Part shown: positions 2,578 through 43,500 of the stretch, piece by piece
Numbering within the stretch: position 1 is the stretch's first letter
Layout of the letters: each line of letters begins with the position of its first letter
Assembly: GCA_964188305.1 (NCBI GenBank)
Contig: OZ076885.1
Strand: one strand, 5' to 3'
DNA: 64,000 nucleotides
Origin: Podarcis bocagei
Lineage: Eukaryota
Notes under the pieces: model-generated
The model's database searches: none
What the model was told of the DNA's origin: nothing
What the model saw: only the letters and a program-made list of their open reading frames with translations
Made by a program: the position numbers and the translations under genes

Positions 2578-17582
<15,005 letters not shown>

Positions 17583-18953
17583 CCAAGCAACGAGAACTAC
17601 TGAGCAGCTGACAGTGACAACAGCAAATCCTGCAAGGATGTGGCTTCGAAGCCAAAAAGACAGCAGCTGCCACCTCTGCTGTTAGATTTCTGAACCTCCT
17701 CTGTATGGCATAAAGGGGGAAATGCTCAGGCACCCAAAGCACACAGATGATCCACCAAGTTAGCAGTGAAGCCATGGAGACCAAACTGGAGGAAGACTTC
17801 AGGCTGCGTACGGTTCCCAGCATGCAGTTCTTCATGAGCAGGACCTGCACGTAGTGCTAGAGCAACTTCAGAGTATATTCTCCAAGCTACTGCCAGCATT
17901 CCTGGGAAAGCTGTTGCTTGGTGATCCAGGTGTATTATCAGGGAATTGTGAAAGGGGTGGGGGGTGGGGGGAGGCAGGGACCAGGGCTGCCTTGCCCCAC
18001 TGTTCTCCCCAGCAAAATGCCTTCCCTTGCAAAGATGAATGGAGTGTGGAGGTGGGGGGCATGCGTGAACATTTGCCAGGACTTTGTATACAACCACAGA
18101 GGGAGAAGCCTGCAGAATGGCTGTGTGTGTGTTTTTGTAAGTTCTGATTTTGAGGTGTCCCATTTTAATTTTCATAAACTCAAAAAAGTGTTTTCAGATC
18201 CCTGGATCCCGTTTTTAGTTTTGCCTGCGGGGGAGAAGGATTTCGAAAAGGATTAGGGTAACCCCATGACCCCCCTCCAGATGTTGGCAGACTACAACTC
18301 CCATCATCCTTATTGGGCCAAGCTGGGAGCTTGGAGTCATGCTGACAACAAAAGGTTCCCTATCTCAAAGGAGTTTTGGCTGGCAGGCAAATGGGATGGA
18401 GACCCTTCTCACTTCTGCACAACGGAGAGCACAGAGAGAAAGTGCTTCTCAAATGGGTCTGGTTTACTTGGATCCCTTGACTACAAGGACATGGAAAAAC
18501 AAGAGGGGACCTGGAGTCACGGAGACAGGGTAGAAAGGAAGAGCAGGGCACAGAAAAATAATAAGAAACGCCTCTCTATCCGCCTACCCAGCCCAGGTAG
18601 CTGCTTTTCTGTTTGGTGGCTCTATGGAGGCTGCTTTCAGAAGGACCTAAATGGTTCCTACTGTAAAGCTATTCAGCTCCAGGCAGTCTTGGGTTGTGTG
18701 GGCAAGTGATGGTGGCCCTGGCCAAGACTCTGGAAATTCTGCCCCTAGATCTTTAGACAGAACTATCCATGGGCCTAGCGCTGGAGAGAGTAACAGACAC
18801 AGAGGGGAAAAGGAGCCAATCCCTAGTTCTGATCAGTTTCAGCTTTATCTCTGCAGCGTCAGACATGAGTTTGTTGCCTTACTGCTTCTAACTCCAAGAA
18901 GGCACCACAAGTTAAAACAGCAACTGAAGGAAGAAGCCAAGAACAGTGGTCCT

Positions 18954-18959
18954 TTTATT
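18954..18959 (-). terminator. Candidate polyadenylation signal (AATAAA) of the novel gene
   Basis: TTTATT on the + strand about 540 nt downstream of the TGA. Confidence 0.55.
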
Positions 18960-19500
18960 GAAGGGGCTGGTTGTTTTACAGCACATTCCCCATTCCCACA
19001 ATCTCTCTCAGCAGAGGGTGCTTTAGGGTTTACATGCAAGAGTTCTTCAACTTTAGCTCCCAAGTGAAAGGGGGGGGGGGAGGAAACTGCCATATTTCGG
19101 GGGGGGGGGGGTTGTGCAGCACAGTGTCTGCATTAGGGCAGCTGCTGTTCCCCACTTGCTCTTCCCATATTTCTGTGGTGCTCTGACTTACTAGTCTAGC
19201 AATGATTGTCACCCTACTGCTTCCGTCCGCATGCTTGGCCATATCTGAAGATGCCAGAATAGGCTTGGCTATATATATATTTATATATGTGTGTGTGTAC
19301 CTGGCTTCTTTTAGCTCTGGCTGCCGGAAGCGGCTTTTGAGGGTCCTGTGCGGCAGTTTGCACAGCAACAATCCTGTCTGTTAGCTGTCGCTAACGCCAC
19401 CCATGTCCTCCGAAGCCAAGAAGAACCTCATGGGGGGTGGGGGAAGGGTCAGTGGGGCTCCAGTCTTGAGGAAAGTCCCAAGGCAGCACCCCGCTGAGGC

Positions 19501-19698
19501 TCAGTCGTCGTCCTGTTGCAGCTGCTGGTGCCTACTCTGGTACCACAACATGGTAGGAAGGTTCTGGCAGCCTTGGTAGCGGCGCTGGCGCTCCTCTTCC
19601 CCCAGGGGTGGCACAGAGTGGCAGGGCGCCCCTGCTAATGAGACGTTGAGCAGCTGGGCTGGGGTGCCCGAGCCAAAGACTGCAGACCATGGACCCAC
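19501..19698 (-). CDS. Novel gene exon 7 (VGPW...LNVSLAGAPC...YQGCQNLPTMLWY...DDD*)
   Basis: Acceptor ctcgttccttgcAG; 198 nt to TGA. Confidence 0.87.
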   Translation of the reverse strand: MGPWSAVFGSGTPAQLLNVSLAGAPCHSVPPLGEEERQRRYQGCQNLPTMLWYQSRHQQLQQDDD

Positions 19699-22600
19699 CT
19701 GCAAGGAACGAGAGAGATTGCTTCACTTAAGGTTGCCCTGGGCCACAACTCAATCCCTCGTCAGCATTAATGCTTATATAGCACTTCCAAAGCATCAGTG
19801 TTTCAGGTACATTATCTCAGTATCTTATACAATCAGCCTGTAAGGATGGCCAGTAAAGCAAACTGAATTAAGCCTGGCTGGCTGGCTTCCACATGCTCTA
19901 AAAATGGTAAGTTTCAGTGACTTCCTTTAGTTTGTTGCATCCAACCCTGTGCCATCACTTGGAATTAACCAATTTAGCCTGGATCCATTGCACTTGATTA
20001 AAAAAAATCAGTTCAAACTATCTTGAATTTACACACCTTTTTTCCTTTTAATGGCAATGGTCTGTTTTTGAGCAGTAAAACTAATTGGGATGTAACAAAA
20101 CACACGTTTTTCTTTCCAAAGGTGCCATATTGCACATCAAAAGACTCCTTTAGTGCAAGCTACCTTCCACAAACTTCAGATGTCATTCTCTAATTGTCAT
20201 CACAGATGGCCTGTGTGTCAGTTACATGAGCAAAGGTTGGCTCTGGCCATTTGCCAAGTTCTAGTTTTCAGCATTGCTGCCTCTACAGCTAAGCATTTAT
20301 TTTTCAGTCTGCCGTGCTGCCCAATTGATTCCCAACTCTTTCCCTACACACAGAGGAGAAACCAAACTGGTTGCAAGATGGTGCATAAGATGGCTTGGCC
20401 TTACCAGGAGCTGTGATCTGCCCTGAACTTGCTGCACAGCTCAGGCCAGTTTTCATCTATGTTAACTGGCTAAGCACCAATGTCCCTACTCCCCGCTCCC
20501 CTCCCCTGGAACTGGGAGTAGAGCCCAGGGAGTGCTGCCACCCAGTTAGTGATGCTGCCACTGGAAGCGGCCACTTTGAACTGGAGAGACACCTGTTGCT
20601 AATGCCACCTGCCAAAAACCAATTTGAGGACAGGCTTTCTAGTCACTATTTTGAGCCTCCTGGTATTATGTCCAGAACTAACATCTCTTGAGGGACCATA
20701 AATAGATGGCAGAGCATATGCATGCAGAAGGTACCAGGTTCGAAACCCAGTGTCCCCAGTTAAAAGGACCTGACAGCAGGCAACATGAAACCTGAGAGCC
20801 ACTGCCAGAGTAGACAACATTGGACAATTAGACTGACTCCATATGTTCCTATGCTCTGCAAACACCAAGCCTTGGACTCCCAACCATCACAGCCCACCTT
20901 CCTTCCACGGCACTTACCGGCAACAAATGCTGGAGGAGGCACTGGTCGGGCTGCAGTCCGGCCCAGAACTCGGCAAAAGCCGACCCACCGCTGGTGGTAG
21001 TGGTGGCAGTGGCAGTGGTGGTGCTACGTATGAGCACCACGTTGGGATGGCGCCGTGATGCCCGTAGCTTCTTCGTCAGTGGCCCCGGATAGCTCTGGTC
21101 AAGGAAGAGGAGAACCCGGCGAGCGTTGCAGCTCTCCAAGTCTGCTAGCAGCTCCGAGATGGGGTACCGCTCCTTAGGATCTGCCTGTTGCAGGGAAGGG
21201 ACAGCTCATCAGCACCTGCCCCTTGGTCACTGACACACATGCACACCCCTCCCTTCTCCACAGTTGGGAGATCAAGGGGATTCCACTGCCTGGGAGTTAA
21301 AAGGAGCGGATTAAATGGGGAAGAGCAAGACAGGGCGAGCACCCACTGCAAAGGCCGGTGTTGTTTTCTCCCTGCAGGCACACATGAAAGAGCTGGACGG
21401 CCCTTTGAAGGGAACAGAGGAGAGGAGAGGGCTGCAGCCTCCACCTGCAGTTCTGTCAGCATCTCTCCTTCCTCCAGTCGGGCTTCCCAGGACATGCTGG
21501 GACAGGTGGGATGACCTCCTCCTCCTCCACCACCCAACTGCCAAAAGTGGCTCACTTCACTTTCCATTTCCAGCCTAGGAAACCCCAAAGGAAACTTGGC
21601 AAATGGCCAAATGCAGGCCTTTGAGAAGGGATGGTGCCGCTTTGTATGTGTGCACAAGGATCTTAGGCAGCCGCCCCACACTTTCCTGCCCCAGTTGGGT
21701 TCACTTGGCACCCTGACTTCACTGCTCCCTGCCAGCAATTGATCATGGCTTACCCCCATGTGATAAATGCATGAGTGAAAGTCTCCTTTATATCGTTAGC
21801 ATCCCCATTCCCTGCTCGGCTAGGCAGGTTACATTAGCATCAATAGCCAAGGTCCTTTTCGGGATGTATCATGAGGAAGTAGGATTCATTCATTTAACAA
21901 GATGCATATACCGCTTGACTGCTGTAAAACCTCCAAGCGGTTTTACTTGTAAGTTAACCTGCTGCTGCTGCTTGCTTCATTCTGCACCAACCGGTAGCTT
22001 TTCCCAACACGCAACATTCATCAGTGCTTGGCTGACCACTGGGTAGGTGGCCTGTGGCTGTGGCTATTGTCACGGATTCAAAATTCTAACTTTTTAAAAG
22101 CGAGGAGCAATGAAGAACACCATGACGGGTTTCCTATTGGATTTCTATGGGTCAGCGTACGGCTGTCTCAATCCACCTGGAGACAATTCCTGGGCAGAGC
22201 CACAGACTCCTTGACAAAATAATATATTGAATAGCATTGCTGATGGGGACTAATTTAGACCATTTCCTCGATGTATTTCTCCCTCTGATCTCTCTCTGCC
22301 TCTGCCTAACTTACCTGGTGGGTTACTCCCCCCAATAAACTGGCAAGAGATGTGCCCCAAGAGATGATATCCCTGCTGTGAAATAAGCAGCACCACTTTG
22401 TAACTTGTGCGGTACTGTATTTCTTGTGCCCCCACACATTAATTCACATGTAGAGGTTGTGCACCAGAGGGAGGGTGGGAGGGAGAGAGGGAAGAGGCAC
22501 ATACCTTTCTCTCCTCCTACAGTGATGTTATACCTGGATCCATCATGCCACCCCACCATCCTCTGATAATACACACCCCATCCATCCTTAAGCTCTGGAG

Positions 22601-24266
22601 GGTTTTGGCTACACATGCAAAATTCCAGTAGGAGAGGGTTGATATCAATAGTGGGGACAGAGGATGGGATAGAACCTTCCTAATATCATAGCTAAGGCCA
22701 AAGGGCTAAAAAAACTGGACCATTCCCATCATACCTCAACAATGATGATAGATCAGCTTGGCTTGGCAATTTAAAAAAAAATCCTCAAAAAAAGAAAACA
22801 GCAGCAGGTTCATTTTGTCTCCTATACCCTTTTGAAATGTGGCTCTTTTGGGGGAGGTGTTATTAGGTTATTGTACTTATTTTGATTTTATATATTGTGA
22901 TCTTTTCTGTGAACCACCCTGAGACCTCTGGGTATAGGGTGGTATATAAATTCAATCAATCAATCATTCAATCAAAAAATGGCTTGTGATGTTTCGTAAA
23001 GAGAGTACAGAGACGAGTGCCTAGGACAACCAATGTTGGCAGCTCCATGGGCAAGTGCTGCCCTGCTCCTCCTAGACAGCCTCTCCCTGACTTCCAGCCC
23101 TGACCCCCCACTTACAATGCCATTACGGTTGGCATCCCACAGCAGCATGGTGCCATCGCTGGCTGCTGGGCTGTTGAGGTAGAGCACCAGCGAGTCGGCG
23201 CAGTGGAGGCTCCTGCAGACCAGAGCCAGGTGGGAGCGAATGGCCAGCTTCTCAGTGGCTGGGTGCACATCGCCCATCTCCACAGTCACTGTCCGGAAAA
23301 GAAGAGGGAGAGAGGGATCTGCTAATCCCGTGCCCCAAAGGCCTGTCTCCTCCCTCCAACCCACTCCAGTCTTGTACACCAAAGCAGCAGTCCCCCCCCC
23401 AGACCACCCAAAAACCATTGGTCTTGGCACACCACTTAATGTTTTTTCTGCCTGTTGTACCAATTGGAATACACCATGCTAGATGCTGCCTGATTTTTCA
23501 AGCTGTATTCTGAGTCCTTCTTATACGTTGCATTTTATTGTGTTCTGTCAATTCAAACTGTAATGTAATAAAATCCAAGGAAAGAAAAATGAAGAAGCAT
23601 TAAAATACAATTGAGTATTTAATGCGAACCACCTGAAAGAAGCTTGACCACAGTTTGGGAACACCTTCCCTGTGGCATCCTCATTCCTCCAACCACCACT
23701 TGCTCCCTGCCACCACATCCTGCTCATCTGGGAAGGGGCCAGAGTTGGGAGCAGCATGGGAATATTTACTAGGCTCTCTCATTAGCCCACTCTGCAAAAT
23801 GCCCCACAGGTGGTTTGGTCCATGCCGCGCAGGCCTGTAATTTTTGCAGGGACATGTAACCCAAAGGCGAGATTTCGCCAGGGCTAGATGCATTCACACC
23901 CAGCATTTTCTCAAGTGGGATGGACAAGTAGGGGGACACTCTGAAATGCAATACACCCCCCCCCCATGCAGAACCTTGGTGGCAGGGAGAAGGAAGTGCC
24001 AGGAACAGAGTCTTGCCTCTGAAGAGCAGCTCATGGCGTCCCGACACCCCTGAGTAGGGCTGGGGGGATATACTGATATATCAACCAAAACCAGTTTCTA
24101 GGCCACATTGTGATAAATGTTTCAAAATCAATGACCCAGCAATATATCGTGAATCACGTGTGTGTGCGTGCGCATGCATTATGCAAAAATCACGATATTT
24201 GGAAAAACAGGAAACTACCCAGTGCTTCTGTGTCTCCCTGAGTTGAATGAGCAGATGCTCTTCCCT

Positions 24267-24326
<60 letters not shown>

Positions 24327-27300
24327 CACACCTGCGCCTGGAAGCAGTCAGCAAAAAGCACGGTTTTGTGAAGCTAGCTGATGCTGAAATTTAAGGAAGT
24401 CCCTCCAGCTCGCGTGAGCAGGAGTGGCATGGGGACTTGCTCAGCTGTAGGGCCGGGCAAAGTATATCAACTGCTTCCTTCTCCCCTCCTTATCTCCTAC
24501 TCCCTTCTTATTTTAGACATCATGATATATCAGTCTATCACAATATTTAGCTGGCGCTTTATCACAATGTTGAAAACCAGATTATCGCCCAGCCCTACCG
24601 ATGGGCACTGAAAAGTCACCCACCCCCCTAAGGAAACCAAGAGCCCCGTCCCACCCTTGCAGCCGACAGCTAGCTCTCTTTTGTACTGGTACCTGAGGCC
24701 TGCCCCTCGCTCGCGAAGAAGGCCTTGATGTGCTCTTGGCGGAAGCCGTTCCGTCGAAGCATCTGGTAGAAGAGCAGCAGGTTCTGCGCATGGTGGGGGT
24801 AGGTGACCTGCTCCTGCCAGCCACCTGGGAGAGAAGCACGGTAAGCAATCCAGGGGGGAAAACATGGTGGAAGAGAGGCTGAAGCTGGTTGCAAGGGGCA
24901 TAGGAGCACTAACACTGCCCCTCAAGGAGACAAGGGGCTCATGCCCAGTAGAACAAAGCTGTAGCTCAGTAGCAGAGCATGTACTTGCACACAGAAAGAG
25001 CCGGGTTCAATCCCCGGCATCTCCAGATAAGGTTGGGCATGTCCGCTGTCTGAAGCCTTGGAGAGCCACTGCCAATCAGAGTGGCCAATACTCAGCTAGG
25101 TGGACCAATGAGCTGACGCACCACAAGGCTGAGCCTCCACTCAGATTCACCCTCATCCATCTGCTGGCCAAATGCAGTGCAAGCACTGCAAGCCAAATTC
25201 ACTGGCTTGCAGTGGTGTGCGGTCAGTGGACTGGGGCACTAGGCTAGTCCCCTAAATGTCCCCGCTAAATTAGAATATTGAAGTATTAAAGCCTGGTGCC
25301 TCCTTCCCAAAGCCCAGGAAGCTTCTGCCAGCTTAGGGATGGAGGCACGATGCTCCGACCAGGCCCAAGAGTCCTTCCACCACCTTCCCAAAGCCCACCT
25401 GGCCTGGGAAGCTTCAGCCCAGCTTAGGGAGGGACCAGTGAAAAAAAAGACAGTAATGGAACCAATAAATTACTGTGAAAATCCCTGAATTAAACAAGAA
25501 CTTGAGTTTTGTAGCCGGCATCTCGTTAAGTTCTTGTTCAATTCCAGTTTATTTTTTTTTATTTTTGTTATTCTATAGTCGATTACTTCTCGTTTCAGGG
25601 ATTTTCACGGTAAATTCTTTTGTTCCGTGTAACAGCTTAGGGAGGGAGGCTCGATGCTCTCTCACACACAATGTCGCCCCCTCCCTCAATCGCCCTCACA
25701 AGCTGGTGCCTCTGGCCCTAACTGTTACCCTAAGAAAAAAATCACCTCACACCACTGATGGCTTCAGATTCCCAGAACCAGCAGATCCTTGCAGCCCCCA
25801 GGCACCATTTCTCACCTGCAATCAGCACTGCGTGGTCACACGTCTGGTACATGCGGCAAGACTTGTACAACGGCAGCTGCTGCCGGTGGCATCGCCGCGT
25901 GTTCTTGTTGAGTTCGCAGTAAGCGGCCGTGGAGCTGGAGCTCGCAAGGGGCAGGGGCTCCGGGCAGGGGCTGTATCCACGGAGATCTGGGAAAGAAAAG
26001 AAAGTGTAGCAGGACGGCAGGAGGGGAAAGAATCTCAGGTCCAACAGACCCAGACAGACACCTGAATTCTCATGGGGGCCCCTTCGCAACGAGGTCTGGG
26101 TAACCACTGTTATCATCTTCAAAGGGGTTGCTCCACAACAGATCACCACACCTTTACAACATCTGAGCTACGGTCTCTCAGACCTTGGGATTATTGAAAT
26201 ATAGACAACAAAAAATGAATCCACTCATATGGGGTCTAAGAGACCCATTCTTTTTTTAAGCGATGGGGACGGAAGTTACTTCTGGGGCGCTGCCAGGATT
26301 CGGGGCCCTGAAGCTCAAACTTCATTTGTTTCAAAGTAGATCCACCTCTGGACACAGGAAATAAGAAAATGATTGGTGAGTCGAGGTGCCCTAGGCCAAG
26401 GGCAAACTTGGGACAATTAAGTTCCAGTTCTGTGGTGCTCCCTTCCAGCTGAGATTCCAACACCTATTGAAGACCTTTTCTGTTTCAGCAGGCACTTTAA
26501 GAAAGTTTTCTGCTTTTTTACAGTTTTAACTGATTAGTGTATCTTTTTAACCTTACTGTACACCGCTTAGGGACTAAGGTGTTAAGCGGTATATAAACTG
26601 TTGAAATAAATAAATAAAAAGGTGGTCACATTGTTCTCCCCCTTCCCATGTTGTCCTCACAACCAGGTAGGTTAGGCTGAGAGACAGTGACTGGCCCAAG
26701 GTCACCCTATGAGCTTCAAGGCTGAGTGGGGATTTGAACCTCAGTCTCCCAGGTCCTAACCACGCAATCTAACCACTGCACAAGACTGTCATCTACCTGC
26801 TACATCCCCTCTTCCTCCACTGCCCACTTACCAAGCTTTGGACTTCCTAAATCCTGAAAGTGGGGGAGTCTCCTTTGTGGTTTACAATCCTGATCCTGTA
26901 ACCCCGCCCCCCTCCACCCCACTGCCCATCCAATCCAGGGACTTACCCACGCAGTTCAGCCTTTGCAGGTGCTTGGGGTCCTGTGCCACCACTACCATGG
27001 GCAGGAAATGGATCTCACAGAGACCGACGGGGGGCTCCTCGCGGCGGATGCGTCCCACAGACCGCTGGCTCCTTCCCTTGCCACGGCCCGGTCGGCGCTT
27101 CAGCTGGTTCTCACAGCGGCTCCTCTGGGCTGGAATCAAGCATTCGTAGCCGCCTGCAGGCAAAGAGCAAACATGTCCAGAATAAAACCTGCTGAGAAAG
27201 TTCCCTATACAGGGCTGCCTTCAGGTGTCTTCTAAAAGTCAGATTGTTGTTTATTTCCTTGACATCGTTCCACAGGGCAGGTGCAACTACCGAGAAGGCC

Positions 27301-30300
27301 CTCTGCATGGTTCCCTGTAGCTTCGCTTCTTGCAATGAGGGAACCGCCAGAAGGCCCTCGGAGCCGGACCTCAGTGTCTGGGTTGAATGATGGGGGCGGA
27401 GACGCTCCTTCAGGTATACTGGACCAAGGGTGTTTAGGGCTTTAAAGGTCAGCATCAAGACTTCGAATTGTGCTCAGAAATGTACCAGGAGCCAGTGGAG
27501 GTCTTTCAGGACCAGTGTTAAATGGCCTGGTGGCCGCTCCCAGTCACTAATCTGACAGCCGCATTCTGGATTAGTTGTAGTTTCCCAGTCACCTTCAAAG
27601 GTAGCAGAGTGCATTGCCGTAGTCCAAGTGGGAGATAACCAGAGCATGTACCACTCTGGCGAAACAGTGCACAGGCAGGCAGGGTCTCAGCTGGCATACC
27701 AGATGGAGCTGGTAGAAAGCTACCCTGGACACAGAATAATATATTATTATATATACATTAATATTATTTTATTTTAGTGCATGGTTTAATTTTCTTAATT
27801 TCTCCATGGGACAAGCAGAGTTCAAAAAGGTTCCAACAAATTAGTAGATTCTGTGGAACAGGTGATGGGAATGAATCTTTGCTTCAGTTGTGATCAATGA
27901 GCAGTTTATAGAGCATTCATGTGCAACACCCTCAACCCTGTGGAAAGACCAGAGAAAATATACATCTTGTTTTTCTTTATTTTGTCTTATTATATACTGA
28001 CCATTTGCCTCCTGTTTTGCTGGGGGTTCACAATATTTTTTGCATTCTTGTTTGTATATATTATCTAAAACCTCAATAAAAATATTAAAACAACAAGCCA
28101 TAATCACCTGTGCATACTACATCTCTACTGTAAACTTTGCAGAACCAAGTCAGAATCTTGTCTCCCCAAGCAGAATAAAAGGGGATTTCCTCCTAGGGGT
28201 GTAAAGTATGGGGTATAAAACTCCCTCCAAAAATGGAGAGGATAAGAAAGGAGTTGGTTGCCAGTTAGGCTGCAGTGCTTGGCCAATTAATTCACAAGGC
28301 TGATGGATTAAAACACATTTCTGATAGGCTAAAAAAAGGACTCCATGATTAATCACACTAAAAAAAAGTTAATCATTTTAAAATAATGAAGGTTAATTAT
28401 TTTTAAAAGAAAGAAGATGCATTTCTCCTCTGTTGTCTCAGCCACATGAGTGAAAATCTCTTCTAATATGGGACTTGCAATACAGTAATGCACATAAATA
28501 TATTTCTTTTTAAGGATGCTTTCCCTGCTTTCAGAATTTTTTTATTTCCTCATTTACATAGAACAAATCAATTAATTAACTAAGCATGTCTAACTAAACT
28601 ACTATGTCTACTCAGAAGCAAATCCAATGGAATTCAATGGAGTTTACTCCCAGGTGAGACGGTTTAGGATTAGAACAACAATCCTACTTTTCAACGTCGG
28701 CAAGAAAGACTGATGTGAAGGAAACGCTCCCTGGGCTCAGATAAACTGTCGTTTTCAGCGCGGAAGAGCAAGGAATTATTGCACAATGTAATGCTTTCTC
28801 CCTCTCCTCCCCTTTGCACACCCCCTAAATCTGTTCTGGGTGTTCCCCTCAACCCTCTGGATCAGATTTGGGGGTGGCACAGCGGGGAGGGAATCCTATT
28901 GCACTAGCACAAGTATTTGGCTGATTTCTGCCTGTCACATATCTTATATCACAGATTCGGGGATTCCTGTGTTCAAAGGGCTAAACCCTGATTCATACTA
29001 AGCCCTGAAAGACACCCTGAGTATTAGCCCATCAATGACAGTCATGCCGAGAAAGATTCCACCCAACTGAGCCTCCCACCTGTCACCCTTTGCACTGCAG
29101 CACCTTCTAACTTTCCTGTACCAAACTCCTCCTCTGATGTAGGGATGTAAGGCTGTAGGGATGGAGTTTTCCCCAGCGCGTCCCAGGATCAGGAGGGAAC
29201 TGGAGATACCCCTCCAGCAGTAGATCCTCTCTCTTGGCTATCCCAAATTCTCCAAGTAACCCCTGCAGGCTGGTCTCAGGATGCCACTGCATACAGGACT
29301 GACACAAACACTGAGCTAGGGACAGCGTCACATACAACTCATTGATGGAAAGCAGACACTGTTGGGGCCCCGACAGTCCCAACTGCACTTGCCAATTGCA
29401 GTTATAAAAGCATGTGTGTGGAAGGCAGAGGAGATGAGAACAGGAGCATATGTGAAAGGAGGACGCTGGAGAAGCCAGGCAGCCTTCCTTCCAGATTTCA
29501 CTGGCTCATAGGATCAGAGGGAACCCAAAGACCAGTCCATAGTAAGCAGGTGCTCCTCACATCTCACATCTCACACCAAACCCTCTACCCTGCTTTTAGC
29601 TCCTACCATGGAAATCAGTGTCTGGCAAAGAGGAAGAGCCAGGATTACTGCAGAGCAGGCAACTAGATCCCTCGAGCAACTGAGACAAGTCACAAGGTGG
29701 AGACCCCAAATCACTCCTCAGTCTTATCTGGGAGGACATCATCTTGCAACCCCAAACATTGCGTAACGTCTCTCCCTCTGCCATACCTGAAGTATCATCC
29801 ATCAGTTGATTTTCTTGAAAAGACGTATCTTTTGGCTCAAGCTTTTCCTGAATCCCTGATTCTATAATAACTGTTTTCCTGGGTTGCTGTTTTTTAATGT
29901 TCTATCTGTTTTTAGGACACTGTCTAATTTTCTATTTTTTGGATTTCTGTACACTGTTTAGAGGTTTTTTAATATTAAGCAGCCTAGAAATGCTTTTAAT
30001 CAATCAATCAATCAATCAAATATAAAAACTGCTTTTAATTAATTCCAGATTAGCGCATCCTCAGTGGAAACTTTATTGGACAGTTTATCTCCAGCCCCAA
30101 CATTCTCTTCCCTGTCTTTTAAGATACTGGGGCAAAGGGCACTCTGCCCCAAGCGATGCTGAAAAAGAAGCTACAAAATATCTGAAGAGGTGATCCAGTG
30201 CGTGAGGAAGAACACCAGGAGGAGGATTAAGGTGCATAAACACAGTCAGTAATTTTCGTGAGAAAAGCATGTCCCGAGGATAAGGCGGGTCACAGGGTGC

Positions 30301-31207
30301 AGCAGTTGGGATACTGAATCTTGGGGAAGGGTAGGCGCAAGTGCCTGTTTTGTAAACCAGAGCGGCACTGGGCCTCAGATATGACTAGATCTCATATCTA
30401 ACCGCTGTACAACGTTTATTTAAACCACCTTATTTTATGCCGGATCATCTGATGTGGACGCCTTTACAGCGCAGATCAGATGCTGGGGGCGGTTCTGCAT
30501 ATGCGTTCTGCGTATGCTTAGGATCAGGCTCCTCATAGATTGTTTAGGGTTGAAATCCGGGCAGATTTGAGCACAAATGCCAGATCTGATCTGGGTCCTG
30601 GCACCATGGAACAGGAGGAAATAGGAAGCCTTGGGTGGGATGGGCGCAAGCCAATATGTTCTCTGCTGGGAGTGGTCGCCCTCGGGGCGCGCGTGGCCTG
30701 AGGATGCGGCATTCACTCACCCACGTAGAGGCTGTCGCGACTCCGGCACCGGCGCGGGCTGACGTTGAAGTCGACATAGAAGAGCAGGAGCGGGTGGCCG
30801 AAGTTGGCGCCCGGGGTGGGGTCCAGCACGAGGATGGCGTCTTGCGCGGAGGGCGCGCCGGTGGGGCGCAGCGGGCTGCCGCTCTGGTTGCGGCCGGCCA
30901 CGAAGGGCGGAGCGCCGGGCCTGTCTCCCCAGCCGTCGGGCAGCAGCGCCCGCACCTTGTGGCCCGGGCGGGCGGGCTCGGAGACATAGACGGCGGGCCC
31001 GGGCCCCTGGGAAAGGCGCGCCAGGCGCTGGCACTGCGGCCGCGGCAAGAGCCCGCCGCGCTCGGGACACTGCGCCGCCGCCACGTGCCGAAGCGCCGCC
31101 GCCGCCCAGCGCGCCACCCGCGCCTCGGAGAAGCGGTTCCCCGACGGGGCGGCCGCGCACGGCCAAGCGAGGGAGGCAGCGGCCAGCGCCAACAGCAGCG
31201 GGGCCAT
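19501..31207 (-). CDS. Uncharacterised secreted protein, 544 aa: signal peptide + Cys-rich region + degenerate peptidase C13 (legumain/GPI8)-like domain
   Basis: Seven exons with canonical GT-AG ends and consistent phases (1,1,1,1,0,0): 31207-30721, 27153-26947, 25986-25816, 24824-24693, 23288-23116, 21184-20918, 19698-19501 (TGA). Total 1635 nt with no internal stop. The start is in a CpG island with hydrophobic MAPLLLALAAASLAWPCAAA. AATAAA lies about 540 nt after the stop. Confidence 0.9.
20918..21184 (-). CDS. Novel gene exon 6 (ADPKERYPISELLADLESCNARRVLLFLDQSYPG...QHLLP)
   Basis: Acceptor cccttccctgcaacAG, donor CCG|GTAAGT, 267 nt, phase 0-0. Confidence 0.9.
23116..23288 (-). CDS. Novel gene exon 5 (VTVEMGDVHPATEK...DSLVLYLNSPAASDGTMLLWDANRNGI)
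   Basis: Acceptor cttcttttccggacAG, donor ATT|GTAAG, 173 nt, phase 1-0. Confidence 0.9.
24055..24597. mobile_element. hAT-like MITE with internal (TC)n(TG)n microsatellite
   Basis: Ends TAGGGCTGGGGGATATA...TTATCGCCCAGCCCTA; no clear TSD. A related element lies near 58720-59694. Confidence 0.6.
24693..24824 (-). CDS. Novel gene exon 4 (GGWQEQVTYPHHAQNLLLFYQMLRRNGFRQEHIKAFFASEGQAS)
   Basis: Acceptor ttctctcccAG, donor G|GTACC, 132 nt; resembles the legumain segment YRHQAD..AYQ..HRNG..EQI. Confidence 0.88.
24958..25120 (+). mobile_element. tRNA-derived SINE fragment
   Basis: A-box-like TAGCTCAGTAG and B-box GGTTCAATCCCC followed by a non-tRNA body. Confidence 0.6.
25816..25986 (-). CDS. Novel gene exon 3 (DLRGYSPCP...CELNKNTRRC...CRMYQTCDHAVLIA)
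   Basis: Acceptor ttttctttcccAG, donor G|GTGAG, 171 nt, phase 1-1. Confidence 0.9.
26947..27153 (-). CDS. Novel gene exon 2 (GYECLIPAQRSRCENQLKRR...LCEIHFLPMVV...RLNCV)
   Basis: Acceptor ctctttgcctgcAG, donor G|GTAAGT, 207 nt, phase 1-1. Confidence 0.88.
27195..27735 (-). mobile_element. L2-clade LINE fragment (C-terminus of ORF2)
   Basis: Translation LTFKALNTLGPVYLKERL...RAFSVVAPALWN...FRRHLKAALY is typical of L2 ORF2 ends. Related 3' ends occur near 8995-9175 and 56800-56950. Confidence 0.8.
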
Positions 31208-31560
31208 GGGGCGGCTGGAGCCCTCGCCGTGCGCCCCGCAGCAGCTCCGCGCGCTCTGCCCGGCCAGCGGGGCTCCGAGTCCCCGCCCTGCCCCGACAGG
31301 AGGAGGAGGAGAGACGGAGGTGGCTGCGGGTGGGGGGGAGCCAAGGACTGCGTCCCTCCCAGCCCCGCGTCCCCTTTTGCTGCTTCCTGGGCAGCTCCTA
31401 CTGCCCCACCCTGCTGCTTCTCTCCGACGGGGCGGCTCGTTCCTCTCCCGGCGCCCTCGTCTACTGTCCACACGGAGAACGACAAGAATCCACCAGGACA
31501 GATTTAGACCCCCCCCCCCAGTTGGGCGCCTGCGGGTCAAGAGGAAGGAGGCAACGCGAG
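30680..31560. promoter_or_regulatory. CpG island over the promoter and exon 1 of the novel gene
   Basis: Very GC- and CpG-rich compared with CpG-depleted flanks; GC-box CCCCGCCC near 31281. Confidence 0.8.
30721..31207 (-). CDS. Novel gene exon 1 (signal peptide to ...DAILVLDPTPGANFGHPLLLFYVDFNVS...SLYV)
   Basis: ATG at 31207 in CCCATGG context, in frame with ORF 30713..31540; donor G|GTGAGT after 30721. Confidence 0.88.
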
Positions 31561-37598: not shown

Positions 37599-40500
37599 TC
37601 AGGACAGACAGCAGTTGGAGGGCTTTGTGCTTCGAGCCTAGGAGGACACAAATATGCTGAGGGTAAGAACAGCCAGAGAGGGCAGCACATCCTTCCCTCC
37701 CTGCCCAACAAGACCGGACTGGCCATTTTCTACCAGAAGAACCTTACACCACCCCACCTGCACAAAGCACACTGCTTTACATTCTATGATGATGGTGGAG
37801 GGCATTATTCTCACTCCTGTTTTGTTTTAAGCTGTGAAATCACGTTGTCTAAAACAATACAAATAAACCAAACTTGTATGGCTATACTTATTGATATTAT
37901 TTCTAATATAGATATTAAATGGTTATACAGTGGTGCCTTGCAAGATGAAAAGAATCCGTTCTGTGATTCTCTTCGTCTAGCGGTTTTTTCGTCTTGCGAT
38001 GCAAGCCCATTGACGGATTAGCGGATTAACGCTATTAGCGGCTTTTAGCGGCTTATCTGCTGATCGGATCAGCTGATAAGCGGCTTAGAGGCTTAGAAAA
38101 AAGGGGGGGAAGGAAAAAAAAACAGCAGGAACTCGCAAGACATTGTCGTCTTGCGAAGAAAGCCCATAGGAAATTCGTTTTGCGAAGCACCTCCAAAACG
38201 GAAAACTCTTTTGTCTAGCGAGTTTTCCGTCTTGCGAGGCATTCGTCTTGCGGGGCACCACTGTACTTAATTGTTCACTTGATATTTTGTGAACTGCTTT
38301 GGGCACCGTTTTGAGGGCAAGTGGCATAAAAGCAAGTGGATGACGACAATATATTGCAAGGAGAGAGGGAAAGGGCCTTTGTTCTGTAATCCCAACCTGC
38401 AAACAGGACTGGTGGCCAAGGGTTAGATTTAAATCTATGTGAAAAAATCTGCAGTGCACAAGTCTGCCTGACCTTTTGGGATACCTGCTTCTCCCCAAGC
38501 TGGGCAGGAAGATTCAGTGTAGTTAGTTAACCTACTCCTCCCTGCAACTAAAAGCATTTACCAAACCTAGGAGCATCCAGCCTCCAGAGTTCCATATACA
38601 ATCAAAGCTGATAAGAAAAGACCCTAAAGGCAGCTGATCTGATTTGGGCTCTAGTTGACTGGTTTGGCTTTGGACTTCCTTGATGCGATTGTCCTCTTTT
38701 ATTCACAAGGAAGCCTTGGTAGACTGGCAGAGTCTATGTGCAGGAGGAGGATCAGAAGCGACTTTGTGGGAATCGCCTCATCTTGCTCACCTGTTGCTGC
38801 TGCTGCTGCTGCTGCTGCCGCCGGTATTCCTCCTCGCTGGCCGACAGGGCCCGAGCCAGTGCAAGGTCTTCCTCTTCCTGGGCGCTGTTTGAGACACAGG
38901 ACTGGATGAGTCAGGCATGCTGCACAATTAAGAATCTGTACCCCCAGCAACTTCCTAGCACATTCCTCCCGAGATAGGGGAGCAATTTATTTTAACAAGA
39001 ACTTGCATTCCATTTAAATCATAAAAACCTCCAAGCAGAGGTCAGTATGTTGGTGTGCACATAGTGATCTCACCACATTTAGATCTGTATTTAATGCTTT
39101 GAGGGCCTAAGCAGCACAGACGTCTATGCTCTGCCTCCACAGCTGCAGGCAGTAATGCTACTCAATACCACTTACTGGAAACCACAGGAGGAGAGTGGGG
39201 TCAAGCTCGGGTCCTGCTTGCCAGTTTCCCACAGCCATCTGCTGGACTAGATGGGCCAGTGGCCTGATCCAGCAGGCTCTCCTTATACTCGGAGGACTGG
39301 AACTGATGTCAACAGTCCTCTGGTTACATGAATGTTAACACAGCCTTTCCCGCCCCCCACTCCATTCTCTGCCAGAGTGTCTCCCATATATGCAGATTCC
39401 AAGCAGGCAGCCTGGCACAGTGGCGCCAGTGAGATATTGAAGCCAGCTGATCTCTGCAGGGCTGGCGCAACCGTGCTGTACCTGCGGGGTTGTGGTTGGG
39501 TGGGCACTGCCTCTGCTAGGGACATCTCCAAGGCTCGCTGCAGCGCTTCCTCCTCACTCTGAAACACAAAAGCAGATTCAGCCTGCCGTGGAGGAGGCTA
39601 ACAGCCTCAGCAACTTGTAGCTTATTGGTACAGGGCAAAGCATATGCCAAGACCAAACTAAGCCTCCTGATGTATATTGTACCCACGAGGCATAGTTTGG
39701 TCAGTATACACTTCCAGAGTTAACACTAAAAACATTACTTCTGGTGAATGAGCCACCACAGCCCCTAGGGGGCCATGACTTGTGCCCCAGACTTTTTAGA
39801 CTCATCTACCCATATACTATCAAACCAAAGGGACACATTGGTTGCAAGGTGTGAATTTTCTTTCAGCTCTTCTACCCCACTGTGGAGGTTTTCACTAGAG
39901 GGAGTTTGGGTGGGGGGACAGGAATTTTTACCAGCTTTCCCCTTTCCCTTGCAGTCACCAATACTGTCTTTCCAACCCTCTGGAGCAGACTTTCTCGAGG
40001 CCTAGGGGAAAGGAAGAACTGCAGAAAATCACCTCCCCCACTTCTGGCCTTGGCTGCATCCAGTTAGCAGAGTGCCACAGTGGACAAATCTGGACCCAGC
40101 CCACCCTGTCTCACCACAGCAACCACTCACAGATGCATATTAAACAAAGGACATGAAGCGATATGTCCACTTGTAAGCTGAGACGAGGCTTACAAGTGAA
40201 GGCACCCACAAGATAATACATTATTTCTCTCTCTGTTTCCTGGCTTCTTGGTTTCATTTGTAATTCGGCTTAAGATTTTTGTTCTCACTTTTGAAGCTCT
40301 TACTTATTTGCCTCTCCTCCTGATCTGTCCTTGGTTCCCCACTGGATTCCATTCTGAACACTTATACACGACTCTTCTCCTTGTTACACCCAGGATTTCT
40401 TGTCCCAACTACCACCACCCTTTCTCTCTGGCTTCTTTTTAACACTAGAACATTTCCCCCCTGCAAATATTCACAGTTTGTTGTTTCTTTACAAACAGTA

Positions 40501-43500
40501 ACTTCTTAAAATGCATTTCCCCTGTTTCTGCCTGTCAGCTCCACCCCACCCTGCATTTGGGTCCTTTTAAACCTATTTGATTTCTAATATTTCTAGGTTT
40601 ATATTCAGAAAAAAACAACCCATTTGTGTAACTGACAATGCTGTATATATATCAGAAGTAAGCACCATCAATTTCAATGAGGATTATTCTCAGTGGGTCT
40701 AGGATTGCAGTCTTTAAACTGTTTTCAGATTACTGTCTTAAACCAGGAAACACACAACTTTGTATTTCTGTCTTATTCCCATTTTTTCCTGCTTAAGACT
40801 GCAAGCAGTTTTGCAAGCCATTTGTTTTCTCTCATGTAAATAACCCAGTATATTCTGGAATGAGATCCTAACAACATATATCCGCTTTGCAGCCACTTAC
40901 CTGGAGTGTGGCATATGTGCAATGGAAAAGGCAACAGCCTGTGTTTAATGGTGTAAATGCCCAGTTTGTTGGCCAGGACTTACCAATCCATTCTGCAGGG
41001 CAACCACCGGAGGAGATATGCTTTGTGGCGGAGGAGGTGCTCTTGCCATCTCACTGGCTCTGTGTGCAAAAAAAGATGTCAACTGTCACTACTTGTGAGG
41101 CATGTAAGATGGAGAGGGAAAATCCCCAGGGATAATCCACCAGGGTGCCTTGGAACATAACCCCTGCGTCCATTGGGAGTTGCCTGTGCAATGCTTCCTG
41201 AAGCTGTACGGTAGGCTTAGAAGAAAGGGTAGGGGACAACGCAGACTCGGGCAGTTATTTTACCTGCTTGAGGTTGGCAGAGCTGCAGCAGCTCTCGTGG
41301 CTCCGTTGCTGGGTGTAGTGCTTGTAGGTGCTTTGGCAGGTTTTTGAGCTCTGGCGATCGCGGCACTCCTGAAACGGGAAACGCAACTCTTGGTAAAAGG
41401 AGCACCTCTCTCGCCATTGCAGCAAGCCCTTCCCCCTTCCCTTGAGACTAGCAAGAATCCACTCCAGCACTATCCTTTCAGGGACAATGTGAACTGTTGA
41501 CCATCAACATCTGGAGGGCCACAGGCCCCCAACTCGTGTGCTGGAACAACCAAGGATGGGGAGGAAACCACTGTCTCCTGAAGAATGCACACCAGCATTA
41601 CTGCATGGCTGCAGGCGTGTCTGGCACATGCCAACCGTTTTGCCCAGGCCAGCCCTCTGTCCCGCCTTTACCCTGCCTTGGAGAGGGAATGCCCAGGGCC
41701 AGCGCAGTCATGATCCAGTGGGTGTCGGTGCTTGAGGCAGAAGTTGCCGTGACACTGGTCACACAGAACCTTCATCATCTCCCGTTGCTTGCAGCCAGGC
41801 CTCTGACACTTGTTGGTAAAGATCTAGGCAGATGGACACAGTTGTGATTGAAGACAGTTGGGGGGGGGGAGGAAGGCACCCAGGACACAGCTGCTTTCTA
41901 AATGTATGCAAGAGACCTTTGCTTGTTGCAAAGTGACCTCTCTGGGGCGCAAGCCTGGGCAGTGTGCATGGAGGTCCTGGACTGCCCAAATGACAAGGAA
42001 ATGCCGAACTGCAAGCCTCTAACCAATGAGAAGTTACATCCAAATTACGGTAATCCCCAAGAATTGGCCTCCAGATGCTGCTGGACTACAACTCCCATCA
42101 TTCCTGACCATGGCCATGTTGTCTGGGGTTGATGGGAGTTGCAGTCCAACAATATTTAGAGGACCACACATTTCCTCCACCCCTGTTTTGAAGCTTGCTC
42201 TTCTAACTTGTCTGGCCCCAATTTGGCTTGTAGCTAGTCTGAACTCTGCAGCTAGACTAAACTCATTAGTGCTACTCAATTTGGATGTACAGCTCGTCCG
42301 TTATCCCAGCCCTTCAGATACCCTCCAGAGAAAGACCCACAGAAACCCCAAGCTGTGGGTTGCTCACAGTTCTGCCATTGAAAGGACCCCTAACGATCTG
42401 GACCACACTGCATAGGAACATAGCAAGCTGTGTTATATCAAGATTATTGGTCCATCTAGCTGATTGACTAGCAAAGACTCTGCAGGGTTTGGGACAGGGG
42501 TCTCTCCCAGCCTGACCTGGAAATTACAGGTACTTTTTTGTAAGAAAACACACACTCTATCACTGAATAATGGCCCCAAACCTGCTTGTGGAACCCAGAG
42601 TCTGCTGAGACACACAATCCAGAGTACAGGGCATATCAGATTTTGTGTGTGTATATGTTTAAATATTAATTTATAAGGAAATTATATTTCTATATGCATA
42701 GAAAAAGACAAAATTAAGGTTGCATCCAACTGTTGTATGTCTACCTATCTGATTTTGATGGACTTAAAGCAACGTGTCCCACAAGAGGCAGCAGAGAGGA
42801 CGGATGCAGCCTCTTACCTTGCGCTTGCGCTGAGCTGGGTCCGATTTGCAGTCCTGGTCAATGTGTGCTCCCACCACAATGTCAGGCATCTCTCCCCGCT
42901 TGACAGGGATCGGGATGCTGCAGAGTGGGCACACGGGGACCTGCACATCCTGGGGACAGAACAGACAGAGAGCAGGTTACACAATGGCCCCTGGCCCACT
43001 CAGTATGAGAGCATACTAGATGCTGCAGGGTCTCCTCATCTCCTAAGGTGTGCTGAATCCAAGGAGAGTATTCTGTTCTCCATCCACCCCACTCCCCAAT
43101 CTCCATGTTTATTTTCTGACATTCAAAATTCTGTACAGTGGTGCCCCGCAAGACGAATGCCTCACAAGACGGAAAACTCGCTAGACGAAAGAGTTTTCCG
43201 TTTTGGAGGTGCTTCGCAAAATGAATTTCCTATGGGCTTGCTTCGCAAGACGACAATGTCTTGCGAGTTCCTGCTGGTTTCCCCCCCCCCCTTTTTCTAA
43301 GCTGCTAAGCCGCTTATCAGCTGATCCGATCAGCAGATACGCCGCTAAAAGCCGCTAATCTTCAATGGGCTTGCTTCGCAAGACGAAAAAACCGCTAGAC
43401 GAAGAGAATCACAGAACAGATTCTTTTTGTCTTGCAAGGCACCACTGTATCTACTGAGCAGGTGCAGTTTTCACTGGCTGTTTGGGGAGATTCTTTAGCC

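Follow-up and report, generated by a model that had tools for sequence, protein, structure and literature searches.

A lizard gene between ABCB6 and ZFAND2B encodes a predicted secreted protein with a legumain-like fold and a serine at the putative nucleophile position

Clan CD proteases, including caspases, legumain, PIGK, separase and gingipains, have been studied intensively. Here we describe a seven-exon gene on the minus strand (31207-19501) of a 64,000-nt stretch of Podarcis bocagei DNA (contig OZ076885.1; the whole stretch is called the window below). We show that the gene is the lizard orthologue of an uncharacterised animal family that databases list as 'si:ch211-67e16.11' or 'uncharacterized LOC...'. 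According to structural modelling, the C-terminal domain of the product (residues ~279-520) adopts a clan CD (caspase-hemoglobinase) fold whose nearest family is C13. The reading that we favour, with a probability of about 60%, is that the protein is a non-catalytic pseudo-protease of the secretory pathway whose former active-site cleft would dock a ligand. That the gene is predicted in other reptiles and in fishes is known already; what appears to be new is the nature of the family, an ancient, presumably secreted C13-like branch that carries serine in place of cysteine, has an N-terminal domain of its own, and appears to be missing from mammals, birds and amphibians.

To identify relatives of the gene, we searched 1.84 billion representative proteins with the translation of exon 6. 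The search retrieved a 544-aa protein of the lizard Elgaria multicarinata (P0001; NCBI 'uncharacterized protein LOC134393305'), which is identical to the window product at 483 of 544 positions (89%) and collinear with all seven exons in tblastn. A search with the Elgaria protein returned 162 relatives, among which those of sharks and teleosts match with E values of 1e-150 to 1e-165, >92% coverage and ~49% identity. Identity to the Elgaria protein is 83-91% in squamates, 52-68% in turtles, and 43-56% in lungfish, bowfin, gar, sharks, rays and many teleosts. More distant members occur in Branchiostoma, Octopus, Lymnaea, Batillaria, the mayfly Cloeon, and the clade-I nematodes Trichuris and Soboliphyme. 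Judged from these matches, the family is at least bilaterian-wide; since it has members in amphioxus, octopus, snails, a mayfly and nematodes, it is not vertebrate-specific. Thus, of the proposal in an earlier note on this DNA that the gene represents a distinct vertebrate C13-fold family, the separation from legumain and PIGK stands and the limit to vertebrates does not. All residues that are invariant in the family, namely the cysteine framework, D282, W291, P373, S421 and N438, are present in the window protein.

No mammalian, bird, crocodilian or amphibian sequence occurs among the 120 best matches of the Elgaria protein, save one with an obvious contaminant label. When the mayfly protein was used as a query to find a named orthologue in arthropods, only four matches were obtained, all unnamed, and the relatives of the Elgaria protein carry no precomputed Pfam domain. 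The same earlier note had mentioned the zebrafish name si:ch211-67e16.11, and NCBI indeed uses this name for the fish and shark orthologues; none of the matches is a characterised gene. The gene can be called 'hidden' in the raw, unannotated sequence, but not elsewhere, as NCBI predicts an 'uncharacterized protein LOC...' in ~10 squamates and turtles.

Splicing of the seven exons yields 1635 nt, corresponding to 544 codons with a single stop at the end. Each intron is of the GT..AG type, with exon-end phases of 1,1,1,1,0,0. The proposed exons, their matching phases and the intact open reading frame were reproduced exactly. RNA contigs of three closely related species (runs X2, X3 and X7), compared over 21160-27159, are joined at the predicted bases 26947|25986, 25816|24824, 24693|23288 and 23116|21184, with CT..AC intron ends on the plus strand. 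Specifically, the exon 2-3 joint lies at 26947|25986 in X2 and X3 and at 26949|25988 in X7, the contig depth reaches 140, and one contig (X3) is 2740 nt long. Contigs of these related species therefore span four of the six junctions (2-3, 3-4, 4-5 and 5-6), while junctions 1-2 and 6-7 are placed by agreement with the Elgaria orthologue and with the gene of the teleost Astyanax, whose seven exons are broken at homologous residues. In addition, 0.92 of the sampled words of exon 1 are found in the RNA contigs of organism C, whose DNA runs contain exon 1 completely. Together, these data show that the gene is a real, transcribed, seven-exon gene.

The data exclude that the gene is non-functional in the lizard, whether as a decaying copy or as a chance run of open frames. 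The reading frame is unbroken and its product shares 89% identity with the Elgaria protein, three species have spliced RNA contigs and exon 1 is represented in RNA, the intron positions are shared with a teleost, and every family-invariant residue is kept. The point in favour of a chance run is that a second, false seven-exon model can be obtained from the same DNA. This 529-aa model, in which all introns are again GT-AG, includes 29387-29210 as an exon and takes an acceptor further downstream, at position 25970; it is ruled out by the Elgaria orthologue and the RNA contigs, which instead use the exon at 27153-26947 and the acceptor at 25986. The false exon (29210-29387, minus strand) is open and phase-compatible, has an AG acceptor and a GT donor, and encodes four cysteines. 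Because such a clean but false model can be built, splice-site logic and an open frame are by themselves weak proof of a gene.

The RNA data contain two further features. At 22760-22960 and 26560-26760, the contig depth rises sharply to hundreds to thousands in all four runs, with numerous loose ends; these are interspersed repeats within introns 5 and 2, not exons. Run X1 (organism A) contains a 1027-nt unspliced contig across intron 5 (21288-22324) and no spliced form, and this contig is pre-mRNA or genomic DNA in the library.

To obtain a structural model of the family, we used AlphaFold2 with an alignment of 38 sequences and the Elgaria protein as the target. The model has a mean predicted local distance difference test score (pLDDT) of 70 and a predicted template modelling score (pTM) of 0.64, and the core of its C-terminal half is confident. 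In a Foldseek search against the PDB, PIGK ranks first (7w72_K and 7wld_K; E 2e-6 to 1e-5), followed by legumain (4nom) and caspase-7 (E <=1e-4); against the Swiss-Prot part of AFDB, glycosylphosphatidylinositol (GPI)-anchor transamidases and legumains are on top. The Foldseek probability is 1.00 in both searches. VIA superposes ~200 residues of legumain, Arabidopsis metacaspase 4 and PIGK on the model with Z scores of 16-17 and a root-mean-square deviation of ~3 Å. Specifically, legumain residues 26-288 are superposed on model residues 283-524, and metacaspase 4 and caspase-6 reach Z scores of 17.2 and 14.5, respectively. The clan CD, C13-like fold that had been proposed from motif order is thus borne out by two structure comparisons and by Pfam, in which Peptidase_C13 (PF01650) is the only recurring family.

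At the sequence level, PF01650 is matched at E <= 0.1 by 12 of the 38 members, the best of which reaches 3e-5. Among the eight members with listed bit scores, only the lungfish member (23.7 bits) exceeds the gathering cutoff of 22.8, and the window exons and the Elgaria protein have no match to PF01650. The matches are collinear with the profile: beta1-alpha1 corresponds to profile positions 3-47, the stretch that surrounds DQS corresponds to ~132-212, and in the amphioxus member the exon 6 region aligns to positions 151-212. C13 and C14 are also the families indicated by protein language-model features. Profile and single-sequence searches against PDB sequences aligned beta1-alpha1 to plant legumain-type ligases (WAVLIAGS..YRHQAD) at an E of 0.3-1, which is not significant; matches to GITR and an arenavirus glycoprotein were rejected as chance. 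Pfam searches with single exon translations gave nothing useful, no member matches the caspase family PF00656, and no match to the legumain prodomain (LSAM, PF20985) was found, with ~45 residues lying beyond the fold. Because the lizard proteins fall below the gathering score and 12 of 38 relatives match weakly, the comparison indicates a remote homology to C13 rather than formal membership.

In clan CD, the catalytic histidine lies on loop L3, after strand beta3, and the catalytic cysteine on loop L4, after strand beta4 (PMC4357240); both residues are described as strictly conserved (PMC9604545). In the window protein, beta3 ends in ..LVLYLN and is followed by an L3 loop, NSPAASDG, that contains no histidine; in the model of the Elgaria protein, the strand at residues 367-375 (beta3) precedes this loop. 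Strand beta4 ends in ..VLLFL and is followed by an L4 loop, DQSYPG, that contains Ser421 and no cysteine. Ser421 is invariant (38/38 members), as is the proline of the NSP motif. In two members the serine falls at PF01650 profile position ~159-160 (counted from the start of the Pfam alignment), which we take to be the position of legumain Cys189 as well. Two residues before the nucleophile position, both the family and legumain have an acidic residue (D-Q-S and E-A-C, respectively). The counterpart of legumain His148 may be Pro373, from an ungapped alignment of the motifs, or Asn371. The thiol-histidine dyad is thus absent, as the earlier note had deduced from the sequence in calling the protein 'catalytically dead', and each of the three motif strings that it quoted is found in the 544-aa product.

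The loops that line the cleft are well conserved, with mean scores of 0.73 for L1, 0.81 for L3 and 0.82 for L4 versus 0.66 for the domain. The loop after beta5 has a conservation of 0.30 and forms a Thr/Ala-rich run in the window lizard. The clade-I nematode members from Soboliphyme and Trichuris (P0045, P0052 and P0041) differ from the others at both loops: beta3 ends in F-I-H-G-P or F-V-H-A-P where the other members have Asn-Ser-Pro, the histidine occupying the Asn position of the NSP motif, and L4 contains D-H-S where the others have D-Q-S.

The product has the features of a secretory-pathway protein. The only strongly hydrophobic 19-residue segment comprises residues 1-19, and an N-terminal hydrophobic stretch is always present in the family, with variable sequence. 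The 544-aa product contains neither a second hydrophobic segment nor a hydrophobic C-terminus, and a membrane anchor and a GPI signal are therefore not apparent, in line with the absence of a transmembrane segment or GPI tail that had been noticed before. The C-terminus is hydrophilic and ends in QQDDD, not in a KDEL-type sequence. The three sequons, one NQS and two NVS, are located at residues 107, 148 and 497, the last of a type (LLNV[ST]) that is kept in 33 of 38 members. The protein contains 19 cysteines, 18 of them beyond residue 21, in agreement with the earlier count of 18 after the signal peptide; across the 38 members, most of the cysteine framework does not vary. From these features we infer that the product is a signal-peptide-bearing, disulfide-bonded, N-glycosylated protein of the secretory pathway.

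Between the N-terminal domain and the rest of the protein lies a loop that is disordered, strongly basic and variable in length; in the window lizard it ends in RIRR|EE (197-200), just ahead of the conserved GLCEIHFLP. This loop and the C-terminus bear on the possibility that the protein is not secreted and is instead a relative of PIGK in the lumen of the endoplasmic reticulum (ER), where it would regulate or compete in GPI-anchor attachment. PIGK is the top match of the model in both the PDB and Swiss-Prot AFDB searches of Foldseek, and two family members have automatic names that refer to GPI enzymes; yet VIA places legumain and metacaspase level with or above PIGK. The two names are 'GPI inositol-deacylase', for the Soboliphyme member, and 'PIG-X', for the AFDB representative A0A4Z2CJQ4 (38% identical to the N-terminal domain), and they look like annotation transfer errors because no Pfam support for them was found. 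Since the protein has neither a C-terminal anchor nor a KDEL-type retention signal, and since the furin-type site implies passage beyond the ER, we regard a PIGK-like role in the ER as improbable.

The N-terminal domain (~23-173) contains the conserved motif HDAVLVLDPxPxxxFGH and, modelled alone, has a pTM of 0.66. It has no significant match in the PDB, where its best Foldseek E is 0.45 and its best VIA Z is 4.6, and no fold could be assigned to it; language-model features for it are weak. Searches of AFDB clusters and the ESM Atlas with this domain matched only the family itself, and the AlphaFold clusters provided six further uncharacterised, non-identical entries at 20-25% identity. When an N-terminal model (residues ~23-278) was compared, chains with the cystatin fold (Ascaris Al-CPI, Fasciola cystatin, tarocystatin, multicystatin and fetuin-B) appeared at VIA Z scores of 3-4.1, within the noise of the tool. 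Cystatins are natural inhibitors of legumain.

These features can be combined into a model of how the protein would work. The parts are, in order, a predicted signal peptide, an alpha/beta N-terminal domain (~23-173), the basic loop, a Cys-rich linker, and the clan CD domain (~279-520). The protein is predicted to enter the secretory pathway, where it would acquire disulfides and N-glycans, and a furin-type convertase would probably cut it at RIRR|EE. Without the dyad, a thiol-imidazole mechanism would be ruled out for the product, and the former active-site cleft would still dock a peptide or protein ligand, making the protein a binder, a decoy or a regulator. We favour this non-catalytic, ligand-recognition role because conservation within the domain is highest in L1, L3 and L4, the loops that shape the old cleft.

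Several points weigh against this interpretation. The missing dyad is the sole ground for calling the protein non-catalytic, and an invariant serine at the nucleophile position together with tightly conserved loops is equally expected of a serine-based enzyme. His148 and Cys189 were matched to residues of the family by the order of the motifs, the secondary structure of the model and Pfam profile coordinates, not by a residue superposition, and the model itself was made for the Elgaria orthologue, not for the window protein, at the mean pLDDT of 70. As for the proposed cleavage, a strict furin motif, R-x-(K/R)-R, occurs in only 16 of the 38 members and is absent in a snake; a looser basic motif occurs in 33 of the 38.

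An active enzyme would use Ser421 as its nucleophile and possibly His300 on L1 as its base. It would be a hydrolase, a transpeptidase or a ligase with secreted substrates, and its N-terminal domain would be a propeptide freed at the basic loop. The serine is kept in 38/38 members from nematodes to lizards, no loops are better conserved than L1, L3 and L4, and the arrangement of N-terminal domain, basic site and catalytic-type domain is zymogen-like. The histidine that aligns with legumain His45 is ~80% conserved; the candidate base His300 is nevertheless variable, and molluscs and amphioxus have lost it. In clade-I nematodes, beta3 ends with His-Gly or His-Ala, but nearly all members lack a histidine on L3. 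A free thiol is dispensable for the ligase activity of legumain, yet the cysteine and histidine of clan CD are described as strictly conserved (both PMC9604545). Weighing these points, we consider a serine-based enzyme unlikely, while treating it as a serious alternative. We know of no clan CD member with a serine nucleophile. The more specific proposal that the family is the first serine-nucleophile line of the clan, comprising secreted, convertase-activated hydrolases or transpeptidases that range from nematodes to reptiles and were lost in mammals, birds and amphibians, is a shade more doubtful still.

Comparison with legumain (C13, PF01650) reveals a shared alpha/beta sandwich across the whole protease domain and a collinear beta1-L1-alpha1 unit (AVLIAGGW..RH in the family and WAVLIAGS..YRH in legumain). 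Both proteins are signal-peptide-bearing glycoproteins, as predicted in the case of the window protein. In contrast, Cys189 of legumain is replaced by serine in the family, L3 of the family lacks histidine, and sequence similarity is at or below the Pfam threshold. The family also lacks the C-terminal prodomain of legumain and instead has the ~150-aa N-terminal domain, the basic loop and the Cys-rich linker.

PIGK (GPI8), the best Foldseek match of the family, is likewise lumenal or extracytosolic, a location that is predicted for the window protein. PIGK, which acts in the five-subunit GPI transamidase complex, has retained the His/Cys dyad and is anchored in the membrane by its C-terminus, whereas the window protein has neither a dyad nor a second hydrophobic segment. 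Caspases, metacaspases and paracaspase (C14) have the same clan CD fold, and c-FLIP is a member of this fold without the catalytic cysteine, as in the si:ch211-67e16.11 family. However, C14 proteins are cytosolic, while the window protein is predicted to be secretory, has no PF00656 match, and has cleft loops that are highly conserved across phyla. TMEM168 is a little-studied animal protein, and the caspase-like domain of its AlphaFold model matches the model of the Elgaria protein with an E of 2.5e-4 to 1.8e-3. Unlike the family, TMEM168 is a ~700-aa multi-pass membrane protein, and no sequence relationship between the two was detected.

The family would thus represent an animal-wide secretory branch of clan CD in which cysteine has given way to an invariant serine and the cleft loops are under strong constraint. 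It would constitute either a new class of extracellular pseudo-protease or, if the serine is catalytic, something mechanistically new in clan CD. Pfam has no entry for the family, and the literature searched yielded no paper about it: queries with 'ch211-67e16.11' and with five reptile LOC identifiers matched only a different gene, si:ch211-67e16.3, and queries on C13 pseudo-proteases gave nothing concerning the si:ch211-67e16.11 family. This neglect may be due to the apparent lack of the family in mammals, birds and amphibians. The zebrafish orthologue makes knock-out, expression mapping and biochemistry practical.

The exons of the window gene, all on the minus strand, correspond to successive parts of the protein. 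Exon 1 (30721-31207) starts with the ATG at 31207 and ends with the donor TGG|gtgagt, and residues 1-167 of the Elgaria protein align with it at 87%. It encodes the N-terminus, which resembles a signal peptide, and the greater part of the N-terminal domain that is specific to the family; QDAILVLDPTPGANFGHP and the sequons N107 and N148 are encoded here. The start codon and its 5′ flank lie in a CpG island (30700-31500), the presumed promoter, with a GC content of 0.75 and an observed/expected CpG ratio of 0.92 versus 0.32 for the whole window, as expected from the CpG-island start that had been reported. Exon 2 (26947-27153; acceptor cag|GCG, donor TGG|gtaagt), to which residues 167-235 of the Elgaria protein align, encodes a cysteine pair, the basic loop with RIRR (27041-27052), and then GLCEIHF.

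Exon 3 (25816-25986) encodes the Cys-rich linker as well as CDHAVLIAG, strand beta1 of the C13-like domain, with RNA joints on both sides (X2, X3 and X7). Exon 4 (24693-24824), which encodes loop L1 (GGW..YPHH), helix alpha1 and strand beta2, and exon 5 (23116-23288), which encodes strand beta3 and loop L3 (NSPAASDG, codons 23152-23175), also have RNA joints on both sides. Exon 6 (20918-21184), connected to exon 5 by the RNA joint 23116|21184, encodes strand beta4, loop L4 (DQSYPG; Ser421 codon 21092-21094), strand beta5 and the variable Thr/Ala-rich loop. Exon 7 (19501-19698) follows the acceptor ttgcag|GTG, at an intron position that is kept in Astyanax, and aligns with residues 474-536 of the Elgaria protein; it encodes the conserved C-terminal tail with the sequon N497, two cysteines and CQNLPTMLW, and ends with the stop TGA (19503-19501). 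The 2740-nt X3 contig reaches ~1270 nt past the stop, giving a probable 3′ untranslated region at 18230-19500 (minus strand; extent approximate), and the same strand has an ATTAAA at 18169-18174 and an AATAAA at 18954-18959. Intron 6 contains a tRNA-derived element (20600-20890) resembling a short interspersed element, and intron 4 contains a (GA)n/(CA)n microsatellite (24190-24350).

In the window, exons encoding an ABC nucleotide-binding domain lie on the plus strand (11680-16660), tail-to-tail with the legumain-like gene, and ZFAND2B-like exons lie on the minus strand (39460-42889), the legumain-like gene being downstream of ZFAND2B. A 38-aa piece of the nucleotide-binding domain, searched against the PDB, was too short to tell ABCB6 from ABCB7 or Atm1. 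The orthologues of Astyanax and the great white shark (Carcharodon) adjoin a convergent gene with the domains MTABC_N, ABC_membrane and ABC_tran, which is the architecture of ABCB6. We name the neighbour ABCB6 because this MTABC_N-bearing gene is adjacent in the fish and the shark. The ABCB6-ZFAND2B interval of reptiles and fishes thus holds an ancient gene that mammals appear to lack, and some database models of it are chimeric with ZFAND2B. Specifically, a 450-aa protein of another squamate (P0006) is a chimeric gene model, in which a ZFAND2B-like N-terminus (AN1 zinc finger and UIM) is fused to exons of the legumain-like gene, and in a 611-aa protein of Sceloporus (P0065) the N-terminus is aberrant; the two proteins suggest that this locus is mis-annotated in other genomes. 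Finally, the early-branching teleosts Megalops, Scleropages, Brienomyrus and Conger each have two distinct family members, which suggests that these pairs are retained duplicates.

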